A DNA stretch of 64,000 nt from Ramazzottius varieornatus. Taxonomy: Eukaryota > Animalia > Tardigrada. Under the pieces are notes generated by a model, which saw only the letters and a list, made by a program, of their open reading frames with translations, was not told the origin of the DNA and did not search any database. Below, piece by piece: positions 1 through 22,400 of this stretch (positions are counted from its first letter, which is position 1; the number at the start of each line of letters is the position of its first letter). Location: positions 744,001 through 808,000 of the forward strand of contig BDGG01000005.1 of assembly GCA_001949185.1 (NCBI GenBank). Direction: 5' to 3'. The position numbers and the translations under genes are program-made.

Positions 1-1798
1 TTATTCCGTATAGTAATCCAGTTTAGGGTTCGTTGAATTCAGTCTGGCTCCATATCGCAGAGAAGGATAATGGACAATCTGGCATAAAGAGCAAACAGAT
101 AAAGACGAAGGCGCTGAGAATCGGAAGTAGTGGCGCAGTTAGGAAAAAGTAGCTTTTGTCGGTTCGGACAATTTATGAGGGGGTAATTATGATTTGGTAA
201 AAGTATGCGGACCACAAGAAAGAGGAGAACGGCCATAAGTACCTTCACGGTCTTCACCACAATGACATCCGTGTGGAAACACACCAACGTGAACACGCTG
301 ACACTGCACGGCGCGCGCAACAGGTGCGTCACCCTCGTACCGTACTGTACATGCACGTTGCCCAACTTTTGCATGCGACAAGTGAGATCATTTTCATAAA
401 CGTCACTTCTGCCCTCAACAACCACAAAGCCGTCCCACAAAACTATAGCCCACAGAGATTCTAAATATTTGCTGCCGACGGCTAAGAATTGAGTGACGTG
501 GAAGACGTGGAAGAATCCCGACTACGCGACTATAAACGGGTCACGGGTTCTGATGGAACGCAATTCTGATGGAAAGTATTTCCTTCAGAAGCTTTTCGAA
601 CCCAAACAGTGGTAAACACGATGCCTATAGTCGTTCGATCCACAGTTCGGAATACTTGGTGCGACTAAAGCTTGATGAGGAAGAGCTGACGGAAGGCTTT
701 CCACTTGGTGCATAGATGGCGCTGCTCAGTATGTAAAATCCATCAGCTCGCACTTCCGGTTCTACGAACGAGAAAAACTACGGATCTAGCAAAGCAGAAT
801 GTAACATTCGTCCATGGAATATGGCAATAGGGATACTCGACAAGCATGAAGAGAGGTTTCAGCAGTTTCAGCACTTACGGCATGCTCAGTGATGGAGGAA
901 GTAAAAGTGAAGCTCGCAGGGTAAGAAGGCATCGGTGGTGGAAGACCGCACACTTTGGCATTGTCGACACAAGTTCCGTTGGGGTACATATCGAGGTTTA
1001 CCACATATAACGGCAACAATCATTATGGAAAGGACCCCTAGCTTTGAGCAGCTTCGCAGACAAATGCTGAGATCCGCACCGCCAACCGGTTTGGCAGCTA
1101 GGAAGAACTTTTCTCTATGAGGTTAACCTGGCCAAATAACGCGCAGGAATGAATTGGTCTGACGCAGCAGCTGCCTCAAAAGTACCTACCTGCCAGCCAG
1201 CAGCCAACTCTCGTGCCGGATTGTTGACAATGCTGTCTGACGAGCTGTGTTAGGAGATGTACTTTGCCATTTCCAACAACGAACCAACCTTCGAAGACCC
1301 AACCTTCAACGTGAATGCTTTGACTAGACGCTTACGTAAGCTAGATAGCGCAGCTATGCATATACCTATACAGCAACAAGCCATAAGCCATAAGACAAAA
1401 CCTAACCACAAAATTGTTTTGCGGTTTTGGGTGAGTGACACGGAAGGTTCCTCGACTGATGTATGCACACGTATAAATTTAACCATGTTCGCTGGTGCGT
1501 GTATAACGCGAAGAGCCATTTGTTGCACGTAAGCACCTTATTCGTACTTACCTACCCTCGTAATGCTTTTCAGGGCCTGTATGGCCGGAAGGAACCTGCC
1601 AGGAGACCAGGATAACGTAGCTGTACTAGCCTCTGGTCTTTCCTATCAGGTTGGTCGATGTGACTTTGCGCTTTTTCGACGTGTAAATTTGAAAAATCAT
1701 ATCGTTGAACTGGGTCGGAGTTTTGATCTGGTTTCTCGTTTGTAACACAGAACAAACTACAGTGTTCTAAGCGATTGCGTGAAAGTTCCGATCGCGCT

Positions 1799-1875
1799 CG
1801 CAGTTACTGTAAATATTCGCAGTTACTGTAAATATACTATAAATACTGCGCGGATGCAGCGAATATTTACAGTAA
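1799..1875. repeat. Short tandem duplication plus TA-flanked inverted repeat (MITE-like hairpin)
   Basis: CGCAGTTACTGTAAATAT occurs twice (1799, 1818). TTACTGTAAATATTCGC (1804-1820) is the perfect reverse complement of 1859-1875. The TA-CTGTAA end matches that of the 41455-41600 element. Confidence 0.6.
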
Positions 1876-2574
1876 TTTCAAAAAACGGTTTTCGGTATTA
1901 CCGCTTTCTGCAGATTTTGCTCCACTTTACAAGAAAACTTCTTGTGGCCCAACTAAACGAGTGAGAACAATGCATATAACAGGTGATAACAGCCCAAAAG
2001 GCAGCGCGGTCAAACAGCCGTTTCGGTTTACTTCGAGACACTTTGGCTAAGAATATAGCCAGGTAGAAATTTACCCCCACGAAACTGCCGCACACAAAAA
2101 AAGCTCGACGTACCACCCCGCAATTTTACAAAACTTTGTTTTTCCGAAATCAGCGTTTGTTTCTTCCATAGTTTATCGCCTTTGGTTTGTATCAATAGTT
2201 CAAGTTATGCAGTACGGCACACAGACACCAGTTACCACTTCTGGGGAAGTAGTAACTGGTTTTGTCGTAAAAAAATTGCGAACACACCCTGGTCAAAACT
2301 GAGCGCTGCTGCTCACATCATTTTTCCTATTTTCTCCTCCGTCTGAGTTGCTTTGGTTGTAGTTGAGAAAAATCGTAGGGATCGTACAAACTGAAAACTT
2401 TTCTTGGCGTGGTGGAAAAACGTTACCAACAGTCGCGTCCACACAACGCAAACTCCTATCGACCGACCTGATATTTCCGAAGGATTTCTTGCGTTCGGAA
2501 TGCATTCCAGAATTCTTTTTCAATCAAATAAGCACTAAAAACATACACAACATATAGATAAACACTGTCAAAAC

Positions 2575-2697
2575 AGTCACGGCAACCTTTGAGATGGGAG
2601 GGAAAAGATCGACAAGTGGCCCACGCTTTTAGCCAAAAACACTGAAGACGTGCGCCACTTGGGATGTGATCTTACTGGGTTTGTTTGCCGAGCTCCC
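2575..2697. mobile_element. ~120 bp palindromic MITE family A copy
   Basis: Core CAAGTGGCCCAC...GTGCGCCACTTGGG (2613-2663), right flank GATCTTACTGGGTTTGTTTGCCGAGCTCCC. Confidence 0.7.
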
Positions 2698-2787
2698 ATT
2701 TACACAAAAATATTACAACCTTCAGTAGCGAAACAGAGTAGTGGAGGAGGACCCGTGACAGAGGTAAGACACAAGGGGAACAGGTTA

Positions 2788-3186
2788 CTAACTAGCGACT
2801 TCTTCGGTGGCGGGTTTAGGAGCTCTCGGCTTGGATGGACGAAGAGCGGGATTCTGAGGCGGAGGTAGGTGGTACTTCTCTCGAATCTCATCAGGACTGA
2901 TGTATTCATCCATGAGCTTCTTTCCGGTGATGTCAAATCGGAGGACTCTGGCACCGTCAATGTTCAGCGTTCGTGTGTAGAACTCCGCGTCCGTTTCGTT
3001 CAGACCATTAGGGCTCCGTGTGGAGTTCCTCCACTTCGTATACGCGACTATGGATATCACAAAGCTAGTAAAAGCTAAAATATTGTAAGCTCGACCCAAA
3101 CGCGTGTCCCATTTCTTGGCGATATCGTAAGGGATAGGCGTCGTAGTGTCCCGAATTAACTTGCGAAGACGCCAGAAGCGCAACAT
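2788..3186 (-). CDS. Small single-pass membrane protein (132 aa), possibly SMIM26-like and mitochondrial
   Basis: Intronless ORF with a basic amphipathic N-terminus (MLRFWRLRKLIR) and W-x-x-R-L-x-x-x-Y followed by a hydrophobic helix. The family assignment is tentative. Confidence 0.6.
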   Translation of the reverse strand: MLRFWRLRKLIRDTTTPIPYDIAKKWDTRLGRAYNILAFTSFVISIVAYTKWRNSTRSPNGLNETDAEFYTRTLNIDGARVLRFDITGKKLMDEYISPDEIREKYHLPPPQNPALRPSKPRAPKPATEEVAS

Positions 3187-3232
3187 GATGAAGGAAGATT
3201 AGTGTCACTGATTCGCTATAGACGCTCAAACT

Positions 3233-3454
3233 TTAGTTGGAAGGCACTGCGGGTGAATCTTCACTCTTTTTCGGCTTCTCCATATACTTCCCGGAACGCC
3301 AATACCGCCAAGCTTCGATGAAAGGATGTGGTCGGACGTCCCTCGGATCGACAAAGCCGGGATTCTTCTGGATTTCCCACCAAGCCCAGTGAATACCAAC
3401 GATGGTAGCGACTCCCGCAATGATGACGGGAAGACCTGAGCTATTATGGACCAT
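3233..3454 (-). CDS. Small single-pass membrane protein (73 aa), unknown function
   Basis: ATG at 3454 gives MVHNSSGLPVIIAGVATIVGIHWAWWEIQKNP. It is preceded by an ATG-free 5' exon with a GTAAGT donor near 3595 and a TTTCAG acceptor near 3519. Confidence 0.6.
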   Translation of the reverse strand: MVHNSSGLPVIIAGVATIVGIHWAWWEIQKNPGFVDPRDVRPHPFIEAWRYWRSGKYMEKPKKSEDSPAVPSN

Positions 3455-4478
3455 GACCTGCTGGGGATCCCCGCTAGGCTTCACATTCGGCGACAACGCT
3501 GGGCTATTCAGCAATAGCCTGAAAGAACATCAGCCGGGAATCCGACGGAGGGCAGAAGTCCGATATCTTTTTCTTGCTACGATAGCGGACTTACCTATAT
3601 AGACACGACACTTCCGGTGAGGTGATAAGAGGCTAGTCTTCTTTCCTCGGCCGAGAATGATGTGATAATCCTCCGTTGGTTCTCCCAACTTAATGGGTGA
3701 ACTTCCCTGATATCACGATGCAGACGACAAACGAGCAGAAGGTGAAGAATCTAGAGCTCGAGATCGCCCCTGGAGTGTCAATTGTTAAACGGATTTCCCG
3801 GATTGCGAATTGCGATTTCGTGTCCGATCAGCTGTTTTAGGCTGCGTTTCGCCAGTGCTCGACAGGTAAACGTTCCGGTACACGGATCAGGACGCTGTTG
3901 CGAATTTACTTGGCCTGCCAAAAAGCCATCCCTCGATCAGAATCAATGCTAACAATCGTGTATTTTGTCTTCTGATCAGCTAATCAAGCCTTGGGATTCA
4001 TGATATCTCAGCGCTTTTGACAGGGCCTTTCCATGCTTTACGGAATGTTCACCTGCCGAATACTGCGTTTCGCAAGTTAGCCCTAGTTCATAACCCGACA
4101 CGTGATTGCTGACGTCAGGGCTAAGAACTAGCATTAGAAAGATGCTTGAAATAGACAAGCTTGGACAATCAAATTGCACTGTCATTTACACGTGCTTGAT
4201 TGAATCGGGTTAACCGTCAATTAGCCTGCTCATGCTAGTTAACCATTAACCCAGCACCTACCCCGTTTGTGACATTGTCAGTCAGGTGTGCAAAAGCTAG
4301 TTGTTAATTAGGATTTTTGACTCACGAAACGCTGCCAGGTGCGTTTCGTATTTTAACCCTAGTCGTTATGATGGACCCAAAATTTCGTTTTGGCGCTTTT
4401 CCTCCTGACAATCGAGATTATGATTGCTCTTTCATCATCCGACTCTTTTGCTCTACTGGTGAGAATCTTGTCCTCATA

Positions 4479-5120
4479 ATGCCAGGTACCGGAGGAAAGC
4501 AGAAGGAAAAAGCACCGAAGGAGGGACAAGCTCAAGACGAGGACGATACGCCAGGCCATTTCACTGTAGCCCAGACGAAGTAAGAAACCGATCTACGAAC
4601 TTGTTATCAACTGATGCTTATGACTGGTCACCCGTTTCTAAATGCGGATTCTGCTTGTCGGTGTCTGATCCACGTTGATCTGCGTGAGCTTAACGACGAG
4701 TTCGTCCGATGTACCTCCAAGATAAGTTATTGGCGACAGGTACGGGACGTCCTGATCGAAATATTTCCTAACCTCAAGAGGACTCCAGCACAAGTTTGAA
4801 AAAACTGGCGCAATCTGGACAAGACCTACAGAAAGAAGGAGAAAAGTAAAACAGGTCTAGGTGCGCAGACATGGCCTTACTTTCACTTGATCGACGCAGA
4901 AAGACGCGATCGAGCAGATATCACACTTGACGGAATGTCAAACATTGGTGGTACGTGTGCTTCTGCTGAAATTTACGTTTGGGTGATTCTTTTGGTTGAA
5001 CCATCACTTTACGATGTAAATGTTGATGACTGTGTGTAGGTGAGAACAACGCCACGGCTCTGTCAGACTTCACCGGTGATCTGCACGCAGGGACAATGAC
5101 ATGGATGATCCAGAAGTAGT
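4479..5120 (+). pseudogene. Harbinger Myb/SANT-like (trihelix) DNA-binding protein, disrupted
   Basis: YWRQVRDVL...KRTPAQV*KNWRNLDKTYRK...WPYFHLID trihelix signature, with an in-frame TGA at 4797-4799. The 3' end is approximate. Confidence 0.8.
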
Positions 5121-5149
5121 CTGGCCAATTGATTGTGACGATGCAGTAT

Positions 5150-6019
5150 TCTCGCAAATGAGCGAATATTCTCGCATCGTGGACTTGGCCAGGTGTGCCA
5201 GTCGACACATGTAGAAAACGACCAGAATTTGAAAATGCATCATACAGTATTTAACTGCGTATGAATATCACGAGCGGAAAGAAAATACTTACTGTTCAGG
5301 ATCAGCAAGAGCTTGCATCACAACGCTGTAGGTATGATGGCGGTTTACGTACTCGTCACGCCTTTTCTCCGGAGCTGGACAGTAAACGTGACGGCCATCC
5401 ACCGCCCCAAAAACACGGACACTTCCGCGAACCGACGAAATTTTTCCATTGTTTCGAGCACCATCAGGTCCAGCTGAACTGCTGGAGGCTCCTTTACAAC
5501 ATCTGGATAGGCGTGCTTCACGGCCGAGACAAAACGTCTCACGTACTTGAAAGCTGTTGACTTCCCATTGCCAAACACCCCAATACACTTACTTTAGGAA
5601 GTACCCTTGGTTAAGTAATGCAGGTCACGAGCAACCTGAAGCTCCAGTGGGTGCTCTGGACGTCCTAAAAGGGAATCTCTCGTAGGCTGTAGATACGGCT
5701 TAAGACCTCGTAGTAGCTTCGCGAATGTCGAACGCTGCACTCCGAAAAATTTCTTCAGATCATCGTCGTCGTCACGGTAAAGCTCCCAGAAGGCGTGTCT
5801 CTGTTGTGCGCGGACCTTGTAGAATGGTGGTTGACGATTCAATGACGAGAGCAGCGACGAAGCAGTGGCGCAATTACGAATAACATTGCAGATCAGTTCG
5901 GCTACAGCTGACATCTGGCCTTCCGTGAGAACGGTTATCTGGTCGACTTCCGGTGGACGTTGGGGAGCTGCCGTAACGGCGATGTTAACGGCCAAGAGTT
6001 GGTTGGACAAAAGATCCAT
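5150..6019 (-). pseudogene. Harbinger (HARBI1-like) DDE transposase, disrupted and truncated
   Basis: FFGVQRSTFAKLL, FGNGKSTA, GAVDGRHVYCPAP...YVNRHHTYSVVMQA and PGQVHDARIF motifs. In-frame TAA at 5594-5596 and a frameshift near 5410. The downstream GDxxY and Glu catalytic segments were not found. Confidence 0.85.
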
Positions 6020-7041
6020 AGTTCGTTCGAAAAGCTAGCGAACACGGGAAAAAAGGCAAGTACTCGGTGATCGATAGACCATGGAAAACTGCCATGAGAA
6101 GAGCGGGGTAGAGGTCAACCAGCATATTTATGCTAGTTAAGCGGGTAGGCTCTTTTCAATGGGATGTGGTTGATAACTTGAGTTGTCAACTCAAGTTGTT
6201 CATAAAGCAACCACGGTTAACAACTACATTGGGTTGCAGCGGGTTGACCATAACGTATGGACTTCGTAAATGCATTGCGGTTGATTTTCGTTGACCTGGG
6301 TTGGGTTAATGAAGAGTGGCTTTGTGAACGCCAGTTCATCATAATATTATGGTCGACCAGGGTTGATAACCACTTACGGAACGCAGCCTTAGACTAACTA
6401 CTCTGAACACGTAGCTCGGCCTGACATAGTAGCCGTCTTATCGAATGAAATGGATTAGCTGACCTGCTTTGCGTGCCAACGAAATTCTGTCTATTAATAT
6501 AGAGAATGCGAGCGAAAGCGCACTAGCACAATTCGACACGCACAGGAATATCGTGATATCATAGGAACAAGTTCGTCTCGTAGGCTCTGTGTTAAAAGAG
6601 TCACGCAATGTATGATGTCACGATGGTCCTGTGCGTATCGAATTGTGCTAGTGCATTTTCGCTCGCAATCTATATAATATTTACGAATCTCTGGTATGCT
6701 TTGGCGTGTTTCCTTTATGTAGCGGCAAATTTGGCACAAAATTTTCCCCTTCCGCCCTGACGAGTGACGACAGGTTTAACGGAGAAGCGAAGTCGTTTTT
6801 GTTGGATTAACCAGAGTATCACTCTGGATTAACTCTTACATATCTTGTGTTTCGCAGGTATTCTAGGTAGGATCGACCGCTGCGCTGCGTCGATCCAGAC
6901 TGGAAGTACAGGATAACTCCACCAACAGCAAGCAGCGAGCGACGAAGTGGAAGCATTCTGCTGATTCGTATTCTCCTAAGACTGTCCTTCTGAGCAAGTA
7001 GCGGTTCTTGTTAGCAGACAACAGTAAACTCAGCCTCACTG

Positions 7042-7991
7042 ATGAATTTATTGCAAGACTCGGTGGGGGAGTTCAGTGTGAAAGCAACGACTTCAGCCGA
7101 CCTCTTCGTTGGATGCTTAGGTAAGTCTTACTTCCAGTGAGATGATGTTATGCAGTCTGATAAGCCGGGCTCATGCTGACGGTCTCTCGGCTGTCGTCCG
7201 CAGTACACCGTTTTTAATCAAGGCTCGTTGTTACAGAAAACGTTATTCACTACATCCTGATGAAGCGTCAGGTCTATCCACGCGACAAGTTTCAAGACAT
7301 CCAAAAGTCCGGGATGAATATGGTTCTCCTCTCCGATACTTTCCCGTCCGAATACATCACCAAAATGTTACGCGCAGCTCGAGGTAAACGTCTGTTGATG
7401 CTTTATGAGTACTTCACTTATCTCCGTCGGTCACTATATACTTCTTCTGCAGATTACCTGGACCGCGGCGAGCTCGACCGGGTGGTTCTGTGCATAATTG
7501 GAATAGCGTCGGGGGAAGTTATGGAACGATGGCAGTTCAGCGTTGATCGCTCGGAAGTTCCCAAGGAAAGTACCGAGTAAGTTCGTCGCAAGACTGCAGT
7601 CTAGTACTCCTCGTATCTGAACAGATCGAAGTGCTGAAAAATCATGTTGCTTGTTGCTTGTAGGAATCCTGAAGTGGTTAACCAGGTCTACAACGAGACA
7701 GCTCAGTTCATCAAGCAAATAGGCGTTTCCTTCATGCCTCCTTTAGACTGTTACTGTTCCTTCAAAATTTTGCTATACGTGGCCAAAGCTGCAAGTCAAC
7801 CTGACGAGAACTGGGAGAACTCTCATCCCCATTACGTCGACGAGAAAATGGAGGCGTCTTTGGACCTACGGCCGGTAAATGTTCCCCATCACAAGCTCCA
7901 AGCTGTCGTCGTCTACAAGAATACCGACATGTCTTTCGTATCTTTTGCTTCCTCTCAATCTCAGTCGTATGCATCTGCCTCATCCAATTAG
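7042..7991 (+). CDS. Mad2-like HORMA-domain protein (4 coding exons, divergent)
   Basis: ILMKRQVYP..F, SGEVMERWQFSV, CSFKILLY, WENSHPHYV and HKLQAVVVYK align with MAD2L1 motifs. Confidence 0.8.
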
Positions 7992-8306
7992 GGTTCGAAA
8001 TTTTTCCCGCCTAATATGGTCACTCAACTCTCGTTCTCATCGAGTTACGAAACCATGATCTAAGTTTGTCTTTTGCTGTTTTCATATCGGATTTTCGTTG
8101 ACTTCGATTCTCTTCGCTAACTTCTCAATAAGTATATAAATAACCACCCGCACTTGTAAGCATGTTTATTTCGAGCATAACAAAAAAACAGTATTGCTAT
8201 TAGTAGACAAAAGAACGAATGTCGGTACGATTCAGAACGATTAGGAAAGGTGCGAAGAAGAGAGAGGTCGTTCGGCGATCAGCTTCTACGATGGGATGTC
8301 TTGGTC

Positions 8307-10342
<2,036 letters not shown>

Positions 10343-10833
10343 GGCGATCCTCAGGATACGTTCAACTGAAAGTAAAACAGTCCACTAGAGAAGAGTGAAT
10401 TGCGGGTTTGCGATTCCAGAAAGGCGGAGACGGTTGCTGGCCACACCCTAAGCGACTACTACGTACGTTTGATTTAATCGCCAGCTTGATTTACGCACTG
10501 GCTACGATCCCAATTATTTTCCGAACGTCCGGGGTCGTCCGCAACCGGAAGTGACTTTGTATTTCTGTAATTCTGTTTGCTCAAGTTCCTGTTGGCGTCG
10601 CTGTGCACTGTGGACACGTAGCTACCTGAGCAACGTCCTCCTCGTTCACCAAATGCTGAGGTCCTAAGGTGAGCCGCGGATCTAAGATCAAGTTTGCTAG
10701 TGTACTGTAAACTTGTGGCCCTCGTTCTTGAGTTAACTTCTGCGTATACTCTCTTTCGAGGGTGCTTGATTTGGGTTCTGGTTTTAGAGGCTCGCCGGAA
10801 GTTCAGACCACGCGGAAACGCGGGAGTTTCACG
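10343..10833. promoter_or_regulatory. Probable bidirectional promoter between UAP56 and SOSS-B
   Basis: Divergent ATGs about 490 bp apart, each with an apparent 5'-UTR intron. An ETS-type CCGGAAGT sits near 10545. Confidence 0.4.
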
Positions 10834-11370
10834 ATGAGTGAGATAATCCTTACCGCATTAAAAGACTTCAAACCGAGTTCCAAGAATATAAACTTCATTA
10901 CGATGGTCTTGGAGCCAATTGGTGTGTTGCACCAGACCCGGGAAGGGGAACAAGTCAGGACGTTTAAAGTGGCCGACAAGACAGGATCCATCAACTTGTG
11001 CATCTTTGGAGAAATGGGTGGTTACTTGAAACCGGGCGACATCATTCGCGTCAGAGGTTATGCTTCTCTTTTCAAAGGTTCCTTGACTGCTTACGTAGGC
11101 AAGACTGGAGAGATTAGGCGTGTTGGCGAGTTTTGTTTGCCCATCTCTGAGGTCCCCAACATGTCCGAAATGAACCTTTTCCCACCACTTCCGGTCCACG
11201 TTCAAGGCCAGGGACCGGAAAGGGCAGCTCCGCCCAACGGGGGCAACTTCCACCAGCAACACAGTGCGAACTTGATGCTAGCAGCTGCCGTAGAGCCTCG
11301 TGTGGCTCACTTTCCACAGCCTGATCAAGGAGGACTTCCATCTCAGATAAACAAATTTGGTACACGGTAG
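10834..11370 (+). CDS. NABP: SOSS complex subunit B / OB-fold ssDNA-binding protein (NABP1/2-like)
   Basis: KDFKP..KNINF, VRTFKVADKTGSINL, LKPGDIIR, GYASLFKG and VGEFCL..SEVPNMSE. The true ATG is at 10834. Confidence 0.93.
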   Translation: MSEIILTALKDFKPSSKNINFITMVLEPIGVLHQTREGEQVRTFKVADKTGSINLCIFGEMGGYLKPGDIIRVRGYASLFKGSLTAYVGKTGEIRRVGEFCLPISEVPNMSEMNLFPPLPVHVQGQGPERAAPPNGGNFHQQHSANLMLAAAVEPRVAHFPQPDQGGLPSQINKFGTR

Positions 11371-11666
11371 AACAGGCAAGAAGTCAAGTGCTTTCTTCAG
11401 CTCGCTTTGCATACTACTCTGATTGAAATCTGCTCACAAAACAGAATCCTGAGAGGCCTTCAAGACAGTGGGATTTTTCTGGAATCTCGTTTTTACGGAA
11501 TTTCTTTACTGATTTTCGGTTTTATATATTTCAGAGCTTGCCTTTACAGTAGTACCTTCTTTTGTTTCTCTTCAGTTGGATCTCTTTATCGGATCCGACA
11601 GTGGGGTGAATTTCATGCAAGAAAGGAAATATGGACAGTGGCGTGAGGTAAATCACTAAAACATTC

Positions 11667-14600
11667 CTAGGAGATTAGAAGGACTTGTAGGTCCATGGCG
11701 TTGGTTCCAGTCAAGCCCGTGAACAGCAAAGACCCAAGAGACCGACAAGTAGAAAAGAAAGCATACGAATCATTGTTTCCCAAGGACTTGTTAGCGTGAC
11801 CAAAATCTTCCGCTCTCGCGGAGGAGAAAGGAAAGTTAATTTGAGCGCCGGCGGCATCCGTGTTGTCTTGACCGTCCGTTCCACAGCTGGCGAAGCTTCC
11901 ACGAAGGTTCTTCAGACTTTCGCTTAACTCACCACTCAGTCCATACAGCTCCATTGCGAAAGCTAGAGCCATTTCCTGATTTCGACCACCCTTTCCGTGT
12001 CCGGTCACAGTTACCGTAGTCTCTCCTCCAGCCACGATACAAACAGGCAGATTCCAGTCGATCACAGGCGACAAAATTCCGTCCGATGGAAAGTAGGAGA
12101 AGCTAGGTTGTTCAGTCGTTAGACCCGAGCGGTAGGCAGCGACGTTCTTGACGATCAAAGCGAAATCCTTTGCTGCATCTCGGCAGTTCCCCTGAAGCCG
12201 GTTGGTCAGAATGACAGCTTGGTACCCTAACTGAATGGCTGTCCGCTTACAGACATTCAAGGCCAGTGTGTTGTTTCCGACCAGAATGTTGTTGCCTAAT
12301 GTCGAAGGAAGGGTACTCGGAGCGGAGTCGTCGCGTGAAAGGACTTCACGGACGTTTTCAGGAGCCGAATCCCACACTCCATAGGCCTTCACTATTTCAA
12401 CAGCATCGAGGTTCCTGGAATTTCCGGGTACAGTGGGCCCACCTCCGATGAGTTCTAATGGGTCTCCGATTATATCGGACAGGATCAACGAAGCCCACAT
12501 GACCTCACTGGAGATATGTTGGGCCAGATGTCCGCCTTTGATTTGCGACAACCGCCCGCGAACCACGTTGAGGTCCTGAATCGGCGCGCCTCTTGATGCT
12601 AGGGTCTTCGTCATCCACAGCTTTTCTTGGAGAGTTACTGGAGGAACTGGTGCACAGAGTAATGCAGAAGCTCCTCCGGATATCACGCATAGTAAGATAA
12701 CCGGATGTTGGACCTTCGAGACGAACTCGATGGCGGCTTTCGAGCTGCGTATGGAATCTTCGTTTGGTAAGTTGTTCCTTCCGGCGAAGAGTACCAGAAC
12801 GTTACATTCCTTCAGATGTGCCAGCCTGTAAAATAAGAAATAAACTAACAAACAATCTACACTGTTGGAGTTATTACGGTACTCGGACCGGTCAGAGTTC
12901 TCAGCTTGGGCTGCCGCTTCCGTAGGAATGATGAGTAGACCATCCTTCACGTGGTCCTTCAGTACGCCATACACAGATTCAAACATCCCCAGGGCTGCTT
13001 TACCAGCTCCAAGTAAACATACATTCCCGTTCACCTTTTGTGCGAACTTTTCCTCTCCACTGAAGTCGTATATTCGAACGGTAGAGTCCGAATCGACAAC
13101 CACGTGCTTCTTGATGAGAGCTTCCGGCTTGACTGCTTCTATCCCAGCAGTAACGATGTTCAAAGCAGCGGCTTGTGTACTAATGACGCGACATCGAAGT
13201 CTTTCACGATACTCCAAGGAACCATCGGTGTCCTTATGACAAAGTGCATCCGCAAACGACATAAGCGGAAAATTCTCTCGGGTTCTCTCGATCATTTTAC
13301 CCTTCGTGATTGAATGGACGATTCGCAGACTTTCAAGGAACGACTGGCCGGGGTACTTACATACTGGAAAGAATCTCACTGTCCAGAGCGACACGTTACC
13401 TTTGTGCTCGGAAGGCAGAACCTCATCAAAGTCTGTAAGGAACGACGAGAAGGCGCTGCCGAAGATCCTCAGCAGCGCCACGTTATTCCGAGGTACTTCC
13501 GCCTTGATATCATCTGCAATTCCGCAAAAGACCGTCACGAACAGGCGTTGACCGTTCACCGACACGACGACCGTATGCATTAGGGTTCCACAAGGCACGA
13601 TGAGTTTTTCGTCAGTGGTCCATGACCCTCCGGACTCGTTGCTGCAGTTACTGAGCAGGCAGTAAGCTTCGACCTGTAACGGTTGGAGAAAGCAACAGTA
13701 CTCCAGGACAGACTGCGGTGAGATGGAGCTCTTCTCATTAACTATGGAATGCATAGTGGTTGTATTGATGCCGAGAGATGCCTGAAGTTGTCGATCGTCG
13801 ACTAAGGCATCCAAGTACTCCCGCATAGTGCCGAGATGGATGAAGCGGGACTGCGGTAGGAAAAGTACTTGGATGGGAACGTCGTGAAGAGTGTCGAACA
13901 GAGCCCTCCGGACAGACCTCATCTTCTGATCTTTGGTCTTCTCGATGTATTTCTCATCAGCATCTGTTCAACAAAAAGACGTTAGAATCCCAACCCGCAA
14001 TTCCATATCCATCGAATATAATGATGGAATAAAATATCACTTTGGATTAGTTTAGTCTGAGTTGGTGGTTACAAACCTTTTCCGAGGGGGCGCATGAAGT
14101 CTCCGTAGCAGTCAACTTCCACTTCCGGTACGCCATATTTCCGGTAGAATCCGAATAGCTTCTCAGCCACGTTCATGTCCATCCAGTAAGCACTGTCGCT
14201 TATCACGCAAGGTTCCGAACGGGCAGAATCCTCACCGCCGGGTTCGCTGCTTACATCCAGCACAGCTCCTCCTTCTTTCATCTCTTCGATAGATGGCTTT
14301 TGGAAAACCTTAGAGCAGGAAAGAAATGCTGGCTCCTGGTTCGTCACGCTCCTCTCGCACACGAAGACTCCATGGGTCGTGCCGATGTGTAAGCTGGAAG
14401 GATGCCCCAGGGCGACGAAGCCCGAAGCGGAAGTTAGATGAGCGGGTGGTGGAGAGTCTAGCACGAAGAGCTCGAGGTCGTCGGACGCCGTAACAAAGAT
14501 TCCAGGCTGCATCAGCGGAATGAAAGGCAAGTACATGGAGAGCTTCAAATCCAACATATCCCAGTCACCGCCAAACCCTGCAGCGTGAAAAACGAACCGT

Positions 14601-17600
14601 AGAACCATTGCTGGCTCAGCTGGAGAATATGCACTGTAACACGTACCGACCGGAAGTGGCATAAACAGCTTGCCCAACACGGAAGCTGACGGCAGACGTT
14701 GACTCCATCCTCCCGCGTGGATCAGCAGGACCTTTTTCGTTTTCAGGTCCGTTTCCAGAAAGCGTCTGTGCAGTTCTTCGAGTACCAGAAAGGTAGATCC
14801 ACCAGCTCCTGTAAGCATATAAGCAGCCTCTCAAAAGAATCCCGCCCTCCCGTATTCATCATGACTATTTGGTACTGTATCTGCCTTGCTTAAGGTGTTC
14901 GGTACATACCGATCTTGCATCTGGGGAAGGGACCCTTGTCAACAACGACAACATAATAGGCACTGGGAACTTCGTGGTGCTTTTTTTTCAGGTCGATTTG
15001 AATCTGGAATGCGCGACCTTGCTCGGCATCGCAAGCTGTCAGTACTACGATGTCCCAGAAAGCATCCTTGGTCCCTTTCAAAGTAAGAGCCGTCGAATCT
15101 GCATACAAAAACAAAATGACACTTATGACTTTATGGTGAGATAACACTGGTGAGATAAACAGACGGAGAAAAGTTTTTTTGGGATATCGGCGAATGACTT
15201 TCACATGATCGCTTCCATAAGCGGCGCACATTTCAGCCAGTAATAATGGAAACGTGCGCCACTTGAGATGGCGATCATGCTCAATTCATTTGCCGACATC
15301 CAATCTATACGAACTTCCGGATGAATTACGCACTAGACGAAACACCAACTTTGTTTTCTTTTTATCCATCAACTAAAATACATTTCGACGTGAAAACCAC
15401 ATCTCGACCCTCGAGACGATGACCAAGAACTGAGTACACCAGCGTACAGTACGCTATGGCAAGAGAAGTTTGAGAGGAAGAGCCAAGACCCAAAAGACTA
15501 CTCAAGTTCACGATCCAGATCAGCGGCCATCTGCCCAAGAGTATCATCGTCATCACTAAACAGATGCTCATCAGGACTCGAACTCGTTGAGCTAATACTG
15601 AACTGGTCAGACTTCAAATGCGTGCTAAACTCATCTTCGTCACTACCATCCTCTCCGAATGCCTCATCCAGCTTCCTCTTCAATGACACAACTTGCACCT
15701 CTTCAGCTTCTTCGCACCCTTCATGAACATTATCCTTGTCTAGGTTCGAGTCCGACGCTTCGGGAAACTCTTCCTCATCATCGTCATTCCCACCCATGGC
15801 TTCATCGATCTCATCTTCCATGTCTTGCAAATCCTTGTCGGAAATCGCTTGGAGGTACGAAGGCTGTCCCTCTTCCGCGGTATCTTGCGAGGTTGAAGGC
15901 ACACTTTCACTGCTCGGGACATTTCTTTTGGGAAAAGTGGTGCTCGGTGGAATAAACTTTCCTCCTTCCTTCAAAGGATACAGCCTTTCATCGACCCGTT
16001 CCCATCTTCTGATACACTCGGTTAACCATTCAGGCGAAACCACGAAGATGTTCCCTGCTTTTCTCGCTTGTGTAACTTTCACCGTACCGTCTTTGCTTGC
16101 AATCAAGTGCGTGGTTCTGTTAGCTTCGATCTTTTCGCTCAACACCAAATCATCATCGACGTTCGCCCCGAAAGACTTCGCCAACGCAAACGCCTTCTCC
16201 TTCTCATCTGACTTCACATCGTGAGGAAAAAGCCCGGTGAAAACCAAGTTACAGTCCTTCAAGACCTTCTTGCGAACGTAGGGGACGATGTTTTTCAAGT
16301 CCGGAAAGTCAGGCGATGAGGGAAGAACCTTCTTTCCTTGGGTTTCGTTCTCGTCGTAGATTCTGTAAAAAGCACTGTGAATTGTTAACAGAGCTTGTTT
16401 GAGGTACAGAAGGTAATCGTCAGCTTCGTCTTCCCCTTCATCAGCGAAACGCGACTGGTACTGGTTCCTGACTGCCTCGGAAGACTTTGCTTCCTTGTTC
16501 TTTGTTGAATCGGCTGTGGTCTCTTCGCTTGATTGACCATTGATTTCTTTGGTTGATTGAGCTGCTTTCTCATCGTCGGCTGATCGGCCTGATTTCACTT
16601 CCGGCGAAATCCCGTTGGCTTTTTCCGTGCTTTCTTTCAGACTTTCCTTGACTGAATTCTTCCTTGGAGGAGCGTTGATGTCGCCGACGTTCTTGAAGTA
16701 GTGATAAGGTTTAACATGAAGGAGATTTGGAGCATAGTTCCACACGTCGTCACGATCGTCGATGATACAAACCATTTGGTCACCAACAGGGAAGATCGCC
16801 TTCATATTCGCACTCTTCAAGTCCGCTTCCAAATGTTCGTCTCTCGAGAGGATCCGATGCGAGAACAACGATCCATCCGGATCGATTATCTTGGCGATGT
16901 GATGAGCGTACAGCCGCGTACCCAGAGTGAAGATGTGCAGCTCGAAGCTCTTCTTCAGATCTTTGAGGAAGTCCAGCAAGCCAGGACGCAGCTTTGTATG
17001 ATACCACGGATATCTCTTTCCAGGACGAAACTGGAAATGGTGGATATCGGTGCGTTGATTACTGACATTTTCCATCGTCGTGTGGATGATAGTCTGATCC
17101 AGATCGACGATCAGGACTAATCTTCGCGATTTCAGTAGCTTGGTTAGATCATCTTGCCCAAGACGAGAAGCGTGCTCGTTGCTAACGATCAACTCGGGAA
17201 TATTGTGGACGACAGGGACCGCAGCTGTGATGGTCGAGTGTCGTGCTCCAGGAACACCGTTCAGTCGAAGATCAGCTCCGCAATGAGCGCACATGTCTTT
17301 CATGACGATGGAATGCGGGCAGCCTTTCTTCATCCGGAAGAGCGGAGTTCCGTCCTGAACTGTATCGCCTTCTCTAACGAGGATGTCAAGGACGCTGCCC
17401 ATGAACTTCGCACGTAGACGAACGTCTGGTCCATCAAAGAGAATGAGAACCTGGTCTTTGCGAACCACTTCGTTCTTTTGGACTTTCAATCTGATGACTC
17501 TTGCTTCTGGGCTTCCGGTGAAAGAAACTGTCTCCAAGTCGTCGTCCATTCCTTCCAACTTGAGACAGGATAAATATCGACGGACTTTACTGTCGGGATC

Positions 17601-17927
17601 AGTATCCTGAATGAACTAACAAACCAAGAGGTATATCATATCACTAGAAGAATTAGACTAGCATCCTAAGATTTGTAACACATCTGTGAAAGCAGCCTGG
17701 ACACCCCGTCACATAACAGGCTGTCACAGCCATCCCTGAGCCACTTCCATCAACTCATACAGTCCAAGTCATTAGTCGTTACTGCTATGTATGGTTATGA
17801 TGCCATCGAGAAGATCCTAGTTTCCAAGTTAGCAAATTCATCCACACTTACCTCTAAGCTTCTGGTAACGATCGAGAAGATCCCGCATGAAGTTGACAGT
17901 GCTGCTCATGTTCTCCGTGCTGCTCAT
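11667..17927 (-). CDS. Fusion of fucose-1-phosphate guanylyltransferase (FPGT) and glycerate kinase (GLYCTK/MOFRL)
   Basis: Exon 1 (17927-17852, MSSTENMSSTVNFMRDLLDRYQKLR, GTAAGT donor) splices in phase to 15098. FPGT motifs: FWDIVVLTA, KIGAGGST, LLIHAGGWSQRLPSASVLGKLF, DCYGDFM, FIHLGT. The frame continues without a stop into GAGKAA, ISGGASAL, KGG, SDIIGD, GGETTV, GGRNQE, GTDGQD and TGTNAMD. Confidence 0.88.
15181..15301. mobile_element. MITE family A copy (FPGT intron 1, downstream of FCP1)
   Basis: GGATATCGGCGAATGA...AAGCGGCGCAC...GTGCGCCACTTGAG...TCATTTGCCGACATCC. Confidence 0.75.
15498..17549 (-). CDS. CTDP1: RNA polymerase II CTD phosphatase FCP1 (intronless CDS, nested in FPGT intron 1)
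   Basis: CPHSIVMKDMCAHCG, catalytic motif LIVDLDQTIIH, KLRPG, IIDDRDDVW, BRCT domain (WLTEC..RWERVDE) and an acidic tail. ATG at 17549. Confidence 0.96.
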   Translation of the reverse strand: MDDDLETVSFTGSPEARVIRLKVQKNEVVRKDQVLILFDGPDVRLRAKFMGSVLDILVREGDTVQDGTPLFRMKKGCPHSIVMKDMCAHCGADLRLNGVPGARHSTITAAVPVVHNIPELIVSNEHASRLGQDDLTKLLKSRRLVLIVDLDQTIIHTTMENVSNQRTDIHHFQFRPGKRYPWYHTKLRPGLLDFLKDLKKSFELHIFTLGTRLYAHHIAKIIDPDGSLFSHRILSRDEHLEADLKSANMKAIFPVGDQMVCIIDDRDDVWNYAPNLLHVKPYHYFKNVGDINAPPRKNSVKESLKESTEKANGISPEVKSGRSADDEKAAQSTKEINGQSSEETTADSTKNKEAKSSEAVRNQYQSRFADEGEDEADDYLLYLKQALLTIHSAFYRIYDENETQGKKVLPSSPDFPDLKNIVPYVRKKVLKDCNLVFTGLFPHDVKSDEKEKAFALAKSFGANVDDDLVLSEKIEANRTTHLIASKDGTVKVTQARKAGNIFVVSPEWLTECIRRWERVDERLYPLKEGGKFIPPSTTFPKRNVPSSESVPSTSQDTAEEGQPSYLQAISDKDLQDMEDEIDEAMGGNDDDEEEFPEASDSNLDKDNVHEGCEEAEEVQVVSLKRKLDEAFGEDGSDEDEFSTHLKSDQFSISSTSSSPDEHLFSDDDDTLGQMAADLDRELE

Positions 17928-19499
17928 CCAGCGATCCCTCCACAGCCACGAAACGCTTACATGTGTATTGACCTGTCAAGAAGATGCTCTTAGGGCGAAA
18001 CTGCTCAGTGCGTGCAGTCAGTGGTTTCCCTAGCAGTCCAATAAGGGTCCGACAACTTTAAGCCCCCAGATTCAGGGCGCTACGACATGAACCCCTACTT
18101 TTCGACTGACCGAGCCATTTCCGTCAACCGGACAACATCCTGAAGTTTGAAAAACCGTTCGTATCACGCATTAAAGCAATAACCCGAGTTACCCCGGGTT
18201 TTCTGAAACGGCGAGTCCATTTGAGCAAATCGTCTGACTGAAATTCGCAAGGAAATGATGCTTGTCCCCACCCCTTTTCGGTCAGACTGTCCTGACGGAC
18301 CGACAGAAAAGAAACATTTGTAGGATCCGAGCCAGTTGGCCAAACCCCCGACGACTGCAGATTAATCTACAGTACTACGAAGTGAAAGTCCATTGACCGC
18401 TTCAGCAGTCTGCAGCGTCGAAAAGCTCCTTTATTGGGAATGTTGACTAAATAGATTTCGACAAATTGCTTAGCTAATCAGCCGTTTTGTCGTTAAGACA
18501 CCGAACAGCGGATCAAGCACGCTCACAACGCGTGATAGCACACCTTTCAGCCCAATCTGGCAAAACAGCTGATCCCCGCCTAAATGAGTCAGTTGCCGAT
18601 TGTTACGTCAAACTCCCAATCGAAGATCTTTACGTGGTAGTTAAGATCCGTGAACTCCGGGTTCTGCAGACTAATCCGCAAATATCGCGGGATTTAGCTA
18701 CCTTGCTAAGATCCTATAAGGTCTTCCAGTATGAAATTGCTGTTCTCCGAAAGCTTGCTTCAAAACACTTATTGTTACGTGGAACGAATGAAGGAGGAAG
18801 TGCTGCTGTATCAGTGGGAGAAGAATCTCCTCGATGGTGTGAGCGCAAGTCGTTATATAGAGAAAGTGGAAGCAGTACATCTAAAAAGTAGAAATACGTG
18901 TAAAAAGCGAAGGAGAGGCGGAGAGTTTAGATGATTCATGGCTTAAGCAATAAAAACGGCAGAGCGAAACGCTGAAAACGTACACCCGAAGCTGCATATT
19001 AATAATGCAGTAAAATGTCATCGTATTATACTTTGGTCAGATATTTTGATCCCCTCTTCTTTACTGACCAAAGCTTATGTTGTCGCCTCCCGTCTCAGCA
19101 TAAGGCAGCTCTACTCCAGCTTCAAGATAAATTTCTGGAGCTGCTTGTGTCTGTGACGTAATTCTGAAAATTTTATTGTCCTTGTTAGAAATTCTTTTGT
19201 CGCCACCAGAGCTTCTAAGATTATACGTTTGACGTGAAAACTTAGGGGCTATCGATGGCCCGTTTCAGTTTTGGCAAAGCATGACCTCTTCGGAAAACTG
19301 CTAGGTGGAAAAACAGGGCTCAAAAGTATTAGCTTTGTCGCCCGAAAAATCTTATTCTCCTCGCGGCCTGGGCGGACCAGATTTTCTTAAACTTCACACA
19401 GCGGTTGAAGACACCCTGAAACACTGACTCAGAGCCTCGTTCATCAAATCCATCAACAATACGGCCAAAGAAATCGGAAAAAACCATCTCCCCACTAAA

Positions 19500-22400
19500 C
19501 TGGTGCACGTGGTTTGTCGGCAATTCACCACCTGCTTTTCAAAAACTTCTCTTCAAAAACCTCGAAGGAATATTTTTCTGGTATCTTTAACGGTAATGAC
19601 ACAATAAAGATCTTAGTACAAAATGACACTGTTGCCGGTGTGATGGTGCAGCTGACTATGCGGCAAAAAATTCGTATAGTGGTCGTGGTTGGACATGCGT
19701 TGTTATTATTCTAAAATTCTTCCTTAATAAGTCGTGTTACGACTTTTAAAAGAGATTCTGAAGTCCGACCCTAAAAAAACAGGAAGTTCAAGCTGAAAGA
19801 CCTCATAGAAAGACTGTTCGGGGTGCCCGGACAGTGAGACCGAAGTGAGGTGGAACGGGACTAGTCCCCTTGTCAGCAGAAGCGTCTTCCTGCAGTAGAA
19901 ACGGATGGGTACATGAAATCATAAATCAGCAGCCAGTGGTAGATTTCCAACCTAAAAAACTGCTCTGTCTCTTATTTTTGGGGGCGAAATTTTTCGAGAG
20001 CCATTCATCCGGAAAATGAGGAGCATAGGGTTCTCGGTTGACTAAACAAATCATCAGCCGACAAGCGTTTCTCGCGTTCTTAGCAATTGTTTTACATGTT
20101 ATTCACCTGGACAGATCTAGCCTTTTCTGCGAGTGGTGAACACATTGAAGGTGTGGCTGACCTGTTGTCCACTAACCAACTTGGGGGTTGCTGGTGGACC
20201 CCAATTTTACTAAAAATTGTCGGGTCTTTTGGCCGGCTAGGAATATACTACTGCCACCGCCGCACCGCGTGTACCCGTCCGGTTCATTAAAATATTGGAA
20301 AAACTTTTGGGTAAATGTAAGCGAGCGTAAAGTTCAAGCGAGAGCTCCAGTCTACCGTTCGTGAAACAGCTTGCGAGAAGTACGATCCGGAGTTCTTGAT
20401 GTTTCTGTGTAAAATAAGTGCCAGAGTTCTAGAGAATACAAGACGACGGTAATGTAGATAAGAAGCTAGAAGATAGAATTCAGTAGACATAGTATCATTG
20501 ACCGCATTGTGCATTGGTGAAAGACGGAGGTGTGAGTTAGAGCATCGTTTCTCGAATTCAATCGTAAGCTCAGGTGGAAGAACAAACAAATCCATTTAAC
20601 GAGGTTTCAGTATGAGCTTTCCTTTTCCGTCGCACGACATGTTAAAGTCCTTCAGCGTCGTCTTCACTCTGGTAGATATTCTGGAAAAGAAGAACGGTCT
20701 TTAATATTGATGCGAGTCTGAAAGTCGTGCTCGTAAACCTATCGCTTTTAAGATCCGTTTCTGGCTACAACTTACATAGTGGACGCTACGACTCTATGAT
20801 GAATGCCGGTCAGAAACAAGATTACAAGGCACAGCGTGCACAGGACAAAAGCAGGATGGTTCAGAAGCGACTGCCAGAACGAGACTTGCTGAGTCAAGGG
20901 ATCCAGGAGCCATCGGAAGGTCGATATCACAGTTAACATGGATGTCATCGTCAGCACAACTGCGAAAGTTATTGTTAATGGTCTGGACAACAAGACTGCC
21001 AGTCAGCTAATGCAAGAAGACGTACTTTGCCACACTCTGGCTGTCTTCCTCGGGTACGCTACAATCTCCTGTATTCGATTCTCGAAAGCCTTGAGATCTA
21101 CAATAAGCCGGGACTGTTAGTTCTCATGATGGCAAGTGGCAATGCAGATAAAAAGACAACGGGCATAAGCTTACCATCCAAAACGTTCTGCTCAACATTG
21201 GAGTCTCCCTTCTCCCTCGCACGTATGGTTGCGTTGTTTGGGAAGCCTAACGGCTTTCGAGACATTTTCGTCCTTCAAGTTCAGCAGACACTGAACTTAG
21301 TGCTGATCTGACCAGGAGGAGTCCTGAAGGACTAGGAGTAGGACAACCAGTCAACCACAAACCCGGAGAAGCTAGCTGCTAGAAGGGTAAGCCAGTGTGT
21401 AGCAGCGGGGTTCCAGACGCGGGGTTCCAGCTCCTATCGTCCATCAGCGATCAATGCGCAAGAAGACGCGAAGGCTTGATCCCAGTTACTCCCAAATGTC
21501 GAGTGCAGAAATGGCGAGGATTGCAACTTCCGGTCCAAAACTAAGAAGCGCAATCAAATCAATCAATGACAGCTCAGTACAGTACGAAGTTTGCGATAGT
21601 GTACATGCATTCTCGCCTTCCAATTGGGTGTTGGACTCCAGTGGGTGGATTCAAGCCCATTCCGGGTTTCAAGATCGTCGATTTTTCTTTTCCGCCGTCC
21701 ACGTCAAATTAATTTTATTCCGCGCTGCTCTGGCAAAGTTTCTTCCCCAGTTCTTTCATTTCATGTTCTTTTCTGGTACGTGCTCCATGGACTGATGGTG
21801 GTGGGCAGAAGGATTTTGCAAGTAATAAAGACGGATTATACGAGATCGTCGGACCACATAACGGGTTATAAGTCTGATTGTTGATTGCAGTCTGCTCTGC
21901 TGTAAGGTACTCGTAACAATAAAAGTCATCCTCTTGGATCAGACGTCATTCAGGATTTCGAACTTCGCGTGCGGGTACATGCGTGCGGGTTGCTGGAACT
22001 TCTTTTCGTTTGTAGGACTGTTTGCGGGAACTTTCCGTTGAAGAGGCTCGTAGCCAAGCGCCGGATGATCTCGGGTCACTCACCATGACTTCATGTTATT
22101 GTTTACGGTACGTACGTTTGAACTTTACAGTGGTGTGGCAATAAAAAAGCATCGCGCTCTGCCGTCCTGATCGTTCTATAAGAGTGCTGGAAGTTTCTGA
22201 GGAATCTGCGCGTGCACTCATATCCGGCAGAGTGATGTGCTGCTACCACGAAGCTAATTTAGGGGCGTGTCTCGAGTCAGTTTGATTATGCAGATTAGCG
22301 GCTTTTTCCTTAGTTTGAACAGAAGTTCCGGTGCGCCGAAATCCTTGCATTCCTATGCAGTCAGGTTCGCGCAGATCGTGGAGGAGACCTTGAAGATGAT

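Follow-up and report, generated by a model that had tools for sequence, protein, structure and literature searches.

Nesting of FCP1 in the first intron of a tardigrade FPGT-glycerate kinase gene, whose first exon the two genes may share

This work focuses on two genes of the tardigrade Ramazzottius varieornatus that occupy the same place in its genome. One is the gene for FCP1 (CTDP1), the phosphatase of the C-terminal domain (CTD) of RNA polymerase II (Pol II), and the other encodes FPGT (fucose-1-phosphate guanylyltransferase) fused to a glycerate kinase (FPGT-GK). We think it almost beyond doubt that intron 1 of FPGT-GK holds the FCP1 gene in the same orientation. We also consider whether the first exon of FPGT-GK is common to the mRNAs of both genes, and judging from the sequence the chances that it is seem to us about even. 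The nesting is already implicit in the public annotation, though it has apparently not been discussed. We found no mention of RvY_10084, RvY_10085 or RvY_10086 in papers or in the supplements of PMC11233135. The window is the whole 64,000-nucleotide (nt) stretch that was analysed (assembly GCA_001949185.1, contig BDGG01000005.1, positions 744,001 to 808,000), and positions below count from its first letter.

The nested arrangement

The large FPGT open reading frame (ORF) retrieves a public entry, 'hypothetical protein RvY_10085-1', of 1,053 amino acids (aa). Mapped codon by codon, this protein is a fusion of FPGT and glycerate kinase that fits exactly to six exons on the minus strand. The first two of these flank the FCP1 coding sequence, so the claim of an earlier, preliminary description that FCP1 lies inside FPGT intron 1 on the same strand holds. 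The parts of the arrangement are as follows.

17927-17852, minus strand: FPGT-GK exon 1, 76 nt of coding sequence ending in phase 1 (exact mapping of RvY_10085-1, N-termini of homologues, profile test)
17851-15099, minus strand: FPGT-GK intron 1, 2,753 nt, GTAAGT...GCAG, enclosing the entire FCP1 gene
17549-15498, minus strand: FCP1/CTDP1 coding sequence, 683 codons plus TAG, intronless, wholly between FPGT exons 1 and 2
15098-14910, minus strand: FPGT-GK exon 2 (mapping of RvY_10085-1)
14808-14647, 14577-14077, 13963-12889 and 12825-11670, minus strand: FPGT-GK exons 3 to 6 (protein mapping), spanning 14808-11667 with the stop

Exon 1 opens with the ATG at 17927, and its open stretch encodes MSSTENMSSTVNFMRDLLDRYQKLR plus one base. 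The donor GTAAGT occupies 17851-17846 on the minus strand, the intron ends with the acceptor AG at 15100-15099, and exon 2 begins at 15098 in a phase compatible with exon 1. Across this join the N-terminus of RvY_10085-1 reads MSSTENMSSTVNFMRDLLDRYQKLR followed by DSTALTL. Introns 2 to 5 are only 101, 69, 113 and 63 nt long, against 2,753 nt for intron 1. The preliminary description had given the donor, a near and a far acceptor, the phase, an intron of about 2.75 kb and a stop codon about 50 nt ahead of FCP1, and all of these agree with our own reading base for base.

A search with the ORF of the inner gene returns CTDP1 proteins of tardigrades and other invertebrates. This ORF carries an FCP1-homology phosphatase (NIF) domain (PF03031, 1e-22) and a BRCT domain (PF00533, 4.8e-6), with a lipoyl-like domain in the N-terminal part, DxDxT in the form DLDQT, and an acidic C-terminal helix that matches the one in Paramacrobiotus. 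Against CTDP1 of the hemichordate Ptychodera it is 41% identical, with residue 1 aligned to residue 1; exon 1 could therefore serve FCP1 only as a non-coding leader or as one holding an upstream open reading frame (uORF). The 55.8-Mb R. varieornatus genome has a single FCP1 match, and this begins just 302 nt past the end of the host's first exon. In a library-wide search the nearest representative is from Paramacrobiotus and no tardigrade protein is closer, while a metagenome scan with FCP1 gave no relatives. No Hypsibius exemplaris FCP1 appears among the matches of 376-1195 aa or as a separate representative, whereas Paramacrobiotus has two. The Hypsibius gene may be a same-strand nested gene that was lost by a caller forbidding overlaps, or it may be hidden in the 50% cluster of the query.

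In the host gene, FPGT is identified by PF07959 (1.4e-48 and 3.5e-35) and by an N-terminal motif before FWD, and the glycerate kinase (DUF4147/MOFRL) continues in frame from the FPGT C-terminus inside a single exon, all within 11667-15098 on the minus strand. FPGT-GK is single copy in the genome. In Hypsibius exemplaris the orthologue, of 1,116 aa, shows the identical set of three Pfam domains and is likewise a fusion of FPGT and kinase, so the fusion must be older than the split of the two genera. Other FPGT matches are all about 580-670 aa and lack the kinase domain.

The first exon of FPGT-GK

The arrangement stands or falls with the claim that a 76-nt stretch upstream of FCP1 is the first exon of FPGT. 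The alternative is that the join of exons 1 and 2 is simply wrong, that FPGT-GK begins downstream of FCP1, for instance at the ATG at 15231, and that 17927-17852 is not expressed as FPGT. From this ATG an open stretch in the FPGT frame runs past the 15098 acceptor. However, it lies in a dispersed repeat, and for this reason we hold that it is not a genuine start.

15182-15301, minus strand: copy (120 nt) of a dispersed palindromic repeat, like a miniature inverted-repeat transposable element, with at least 56 matches in the genome, containing the ATG at 15231

The preliminary description had rejected 15231 as a start, and we concur: as an FPGT start it is spurious, and Pfam gives no match to the peptide that would be added. 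The same description expected that a gene caller would start FPGT there, and in this it was mistaken, since the public model already uses exon 1.

The positive case for exon 1 comes from homologues. FPGT N-termini of molluscs, brachiopods, annelids, arthropods, hemichordates and vertebrates have in common a motif FM..L..Y..(I/L)RG shortly before FWD. Exon 1 bears this motif as FM..L..Y..LR, and the Hypsibius orthologue has it as FMQDVLRKYEILRG. We built a profile from 15 non-tardigrade N-termini, trimmed to end before FWD, and ran it against the six-frame translation of 15099-20000, cut into 241 pieces free of stops. The exon-1 piece is the sole match, with an E-value of 2.2e-4, and the next best piece reaches 0.31. 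The join of exon 1 to exon 2 exceeds chance, because RvY_10085-1 maps to it exactly and because the profile picks the exon-1 piece alone. The donor, the phase and the acceptor all agree as well, and the claim that this stretch is the first exon of FPGT is thus borne out. We regard an error in the join as very improbable.

According to PMC5034306, the gene set of R. varieornatus combines TopHat/Cufflinks models of RNA-seq data with models predicted ab initio, and 'non-overlapping ORFs were extracted' from the transcript models. A prediction made ab initio is unlikely to have passed over a 2-kb ORF lying in the same orientation, and the 17852>15098 junction therefore probably has read support.

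Lying past the FCP1 3' end and ahead of FPGT exon 2, the repeat copy at 15182-15301 can form a strong hairpin in the pre-mRNA (-67.3 kcal/mol, z -8.7), 83 nt upstream of exon 2. As a microRNA precursor it is weak, at 27 bits against a threshold of 69, and an Rfam search gave nothing above threshold. We found no long-range inverted repeat that would pair the start of intron 1 with its end; the top candidates, one of 16 nt (81%) and one of 12 nt (100%), are at chance level.

Expression of FCP1

The fundamental question is how the inner gene is transcribed. The region between exon 1 and the FCP1 start codon, and the region past its stop, contain the following.

17851-17607, minus strand: stretch from the donor to the near acceptor, 245 nt, unique in the genome, with 10 ATGs; a short intron or, alternatively, DNA of the FCP1 promoter
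17628-17607, minus strand: T-rich tract with two acceptor-like AGs, for exon starts at 17615 and 17606
17606-17550, minus strand: putative FCP1 5' leader, free of ATGs, containing the uORF stop TGA (17601-17599) that splicing would create
15366-15336, minus strand: candidate FCP1 3'-end region with GATAAA, an A-rich run and then a GT-rich stretch, presumed to act in 3'-end formation

The 10 ATGs of the 245-nt stretch, where about 4 are expected, make it unlikely that this DNA is within the translated leader of FCP1. The last 87 nt ahead of the FCP1 ATG have none at all, so the mature leader must start at about 17640 or later, whether by splicing or by initiation. This argument narrows the choice and does not make it.

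We believe the following scenario deserves the most attention. A single short upstream control region would drive transcription through the 76-nt exon 1. If the donor at 17851 were joined to the far acceptor at 15098, the FCP1 unit would be skipped and FPGT-GK mRNA would result. If the same donor were joined to the near acceptor at 17615 or 17606, the product would be FCP1 mRNA, and this mRNA would end near 15340. In it the FPGT start codons would open a uORF of 27-30 codons that ends with the stop at 17601-17599 and leaves 49 nt to the FCP1 ATG, itself in good context. The same ATGs would then begin either the FPGT-GK protein, after a join to 15098, or a short uORF that throttles FCP1, after a join to 17606 or 17615, all from one promoter and one exon. 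We put this full scheme forward tentatively, as somewhat less probable than the sharing of exon 1 as such.

Several features of the sequence fit such splicing. The near acceptor TTCATTCAG ends at 17607, and joining exon 1 to 17606 gives G|GA TAC TGA, where the bar marks the junction. The exon starts at 17606 and 17615 share a frame, so that from either one the exon-1 frame runs to the TGA at 17601-17599. Acceptor-like sites at 17643, 17615 and 17606 fall within 40 nt, whereas the background rate on this strand is 1.9 per kb. Intron 5 of FPGT-GK, which is verified, has at its 3' end an 11-mer, GTTTGTTAGTT, that is also part of the near-acceptor tract. The start contexts are GGAatgG for FCP1, which is optimal, and TGGatgA for the first FPGT ATG, which is weak. 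The branch-point consensus is uninformative here, YTRAY being missing from 3 of the 4 verified short introns of FPGT-GK. We would expect the near acceptor to be used at least sometimes, because a strong donor is followed 245 nt on by a usable acceptor in a genome of short introns.

Downstream of FCP1 the distance from its stop to the candidate 3'-end region is about 135 nt. There is no canonical AATAAA or ATTAAA on the minus strand from 10478 to 18430, an 8-kb region in which both FCP1 and FPGT-GK end; R. varieornatus probably makes frequent use of non-canonical poly(A) signals. Both the use of the near acceptor and the position of the FCP1 poly(A) site are things we infer.

Three points weigh against a shared exon. 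The cluster of acceptor-like sites is not statistically compelling, since 100 nt should contain about 0.2 such sites and all three belong to a single T-rich tract. The near-acceptor tract also holds the TCATTC discussed below, which fits an initiator equally. Finally, the second upstream ATG, at 17909, is in good context, so a uORF would cost FCP1 translation.

These points lead to the most serious alternative, that FCP1 is a plain nested gene with its own promoter and a start at about 17640-17560. Exon 1 would then belong to FPGT-GK only, the FCP1 leader would be short and without upstream ATGs, and any splicing of exon 1 to 17606 would be noise. A start could lie at TCATTC (17613-17608), which fits the arthropod-type initiator consensus and has the AT-rich GATATGATATAC about 20-30 nt upstream. 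The ATG-free final 87 nt suit this reading as well, and a uORF with three ATGs is undesirable for an essential housekeeping enzyme. Most nested genes described elsewhere have promoters of their own. On the other side, a tandem promoter only about 300 nt past the host start would suffer interference, and host transcripts would go on being spliced from the donor to the near acceptor. About 0.3 initiator matches are expected per 300 nt by chance, and if FCP1 arrived as a retrocopy it brought no promoter with it. We hold an independent promoter to be a real contender, a little short of an even chance. As we read the sequence, neither the splicing signals nor the initiation signals at the FCP1 5' end are statistically decisive.

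A third possibility is a shared start without splicing, in which the FCP1 mRNA is an unspliced host transcript that is polyadenylated early and retains 17851-17607. The exon-1 frame read through the donor stops at 17840-17838, so FCP1 would not be fused to it. However, 10 extra upstream ATGs (13 in total) and a perfect GTAAGT left unused make a poor leader for an essential gene, and we give this version very little credence.

The preliminary description went further and suggested that FCP1 regulates itself here, the protein altering CTD phosphorylation and so feeding back on the choice of splice site or poly(A) site at its own locus. The CTD is generally coupled to RNA processing, and this general coupling is all that speaks for the idea. 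We found no locus-specific element and nothing in the sequence behind it, and it depends on a shared-exon model that is itself unproven. Autoregulation seems to us highly improbable.

Comparison with known systems

The closest precedent for a shared first exon is the cholinergic locus, where the whole VAChT ORF lies in ChAT's first intron, exon 1 is shared, and alternative splicing yields two unrelated proteins (PMC7524744). As in ChAT/VAChT (cha-1/unc-17), the FCP1 ORF lies in one exon, in the host's first intron and on the same strand. The two cases differ in that the sharing is proven for ChAT/VAChT, its products act in one pathway and its layout is conserved across animals, whereas FCP1 and FPGT have no known functional link. 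The candidate shared exon is also of another kind, since the host would use it as coding sequence and the inner gene as a uORF.

Retrocopies in host introns offer a second comparison. Their transcripts can be chimeras that include host exons from upstream, as with Taf9 in Ak6 (PMC4772013). There, as here, an intronless gene of the transcription machinery lies in sense orientation in an intron of a metabolic enzyme gene, close behind a 5' exon of the host. The FCP1 case differs in that the genome keeps no parental copy and that we found neither a target-site duplication nor a clear poly(A) tail, and chimeric transcripts of FCP1 would be putative.

FCP1 resembles ordinary same-strand nested genes in being complete within a long intron of another gene, and differs from them in lying so close behind the host's first exon and in being the organism's sole FCP1. 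The vertebrate FPGT-TNNI3K read-through also joins FPGT 5' exons to a different gene, and three TNNI3K-named proteins with an FPGT domain are among the FPGT homologues. In that case the partner lies downstream and is not nested, and the product is a fusion protein.

Origin of the intronless FCP1 gene

Our data suggest that FCP1 was retroposed into FPGT intron 1 and that the parent was then lost. The argument is that an intronless 2-kb coding sequence is unusual in this genome, where the mean exon is 234 bp (PMC5034306), and that FCP1 of Paramacrobiotus appears to have introns. The latter follows from one Paramacrobiotus FCP1 being listed as 'isoform X2' with a different N-terminus. Three observations weigh against retroposition. 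The host gene has exons of 1.1 kb too, so an intronless coding sequence of 2 kb is not decisive. A direct-repeat search found no target-site duplication flanking FCP1, and the A-rich run at 15365-15349 downstream of the gene is no clear remnant of a poly(A) tail. Moreover, the 55.8-Mb genome holds no intron-bearing parental copy, so FCP1 would have to be an orphan retrogene.

Other features of the locus

The beginning of exon 1 (17892-17927) is an 18-nt tandem duplication, 36 nt in all, that encodes MSSTEN/MSSTVN and provides two in-frame ATGs, the second in better context than the first. An exact 13-nt direct repeat, GGATCTTCTCGAT, is found at 17871-17883 in exon 1 (codons DLLD) and at 17805-17817 in the intron, 66 nt apart. 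It has 8 copies genome-wide, two of them at the FPGT locus, and is not a genome-wide motif; the pair may be what is left of an exon-1 end that was duplicated locally. Just upstream of exon 1 are two dispersed repeats of about 145 nt (18092-18234 and 18248-18400), with copies 75-79% identical on several contigs, and only about 165 nt of unique DNA is left ahead of the exon-1 ATG.

Introns 3 (14578-14646, 69 nt) and 5 (12826-12888, 63 nt) of FPGT-GK have lengths divisible by three and contain no stop codon. Retention of either would keep the frame, and the raw ORFs run through both.

Conclusions

What this locus means for the animal depends on the 5' end of FCP1. If FCP1 has its own start site it is an ordinary nested gene, and our result mainly serves to comment on the annotation; gene callers readily miss nested genes that share the strand of their host. 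If exon 1 is shared, the locus would be a clear-cut example of the ChAT/VAChT layout outside neurons, one in which the host start codon doubles as a regulatory uORF. In an animal whose genome is very compact, expression of an essential enzyme of the transcription cycle would then be linked to a gene of sugar salvage, and the level of the only Pol II CTD phosphatase would be set by the choice of splice site and poly(A) site at a metabolic gene.

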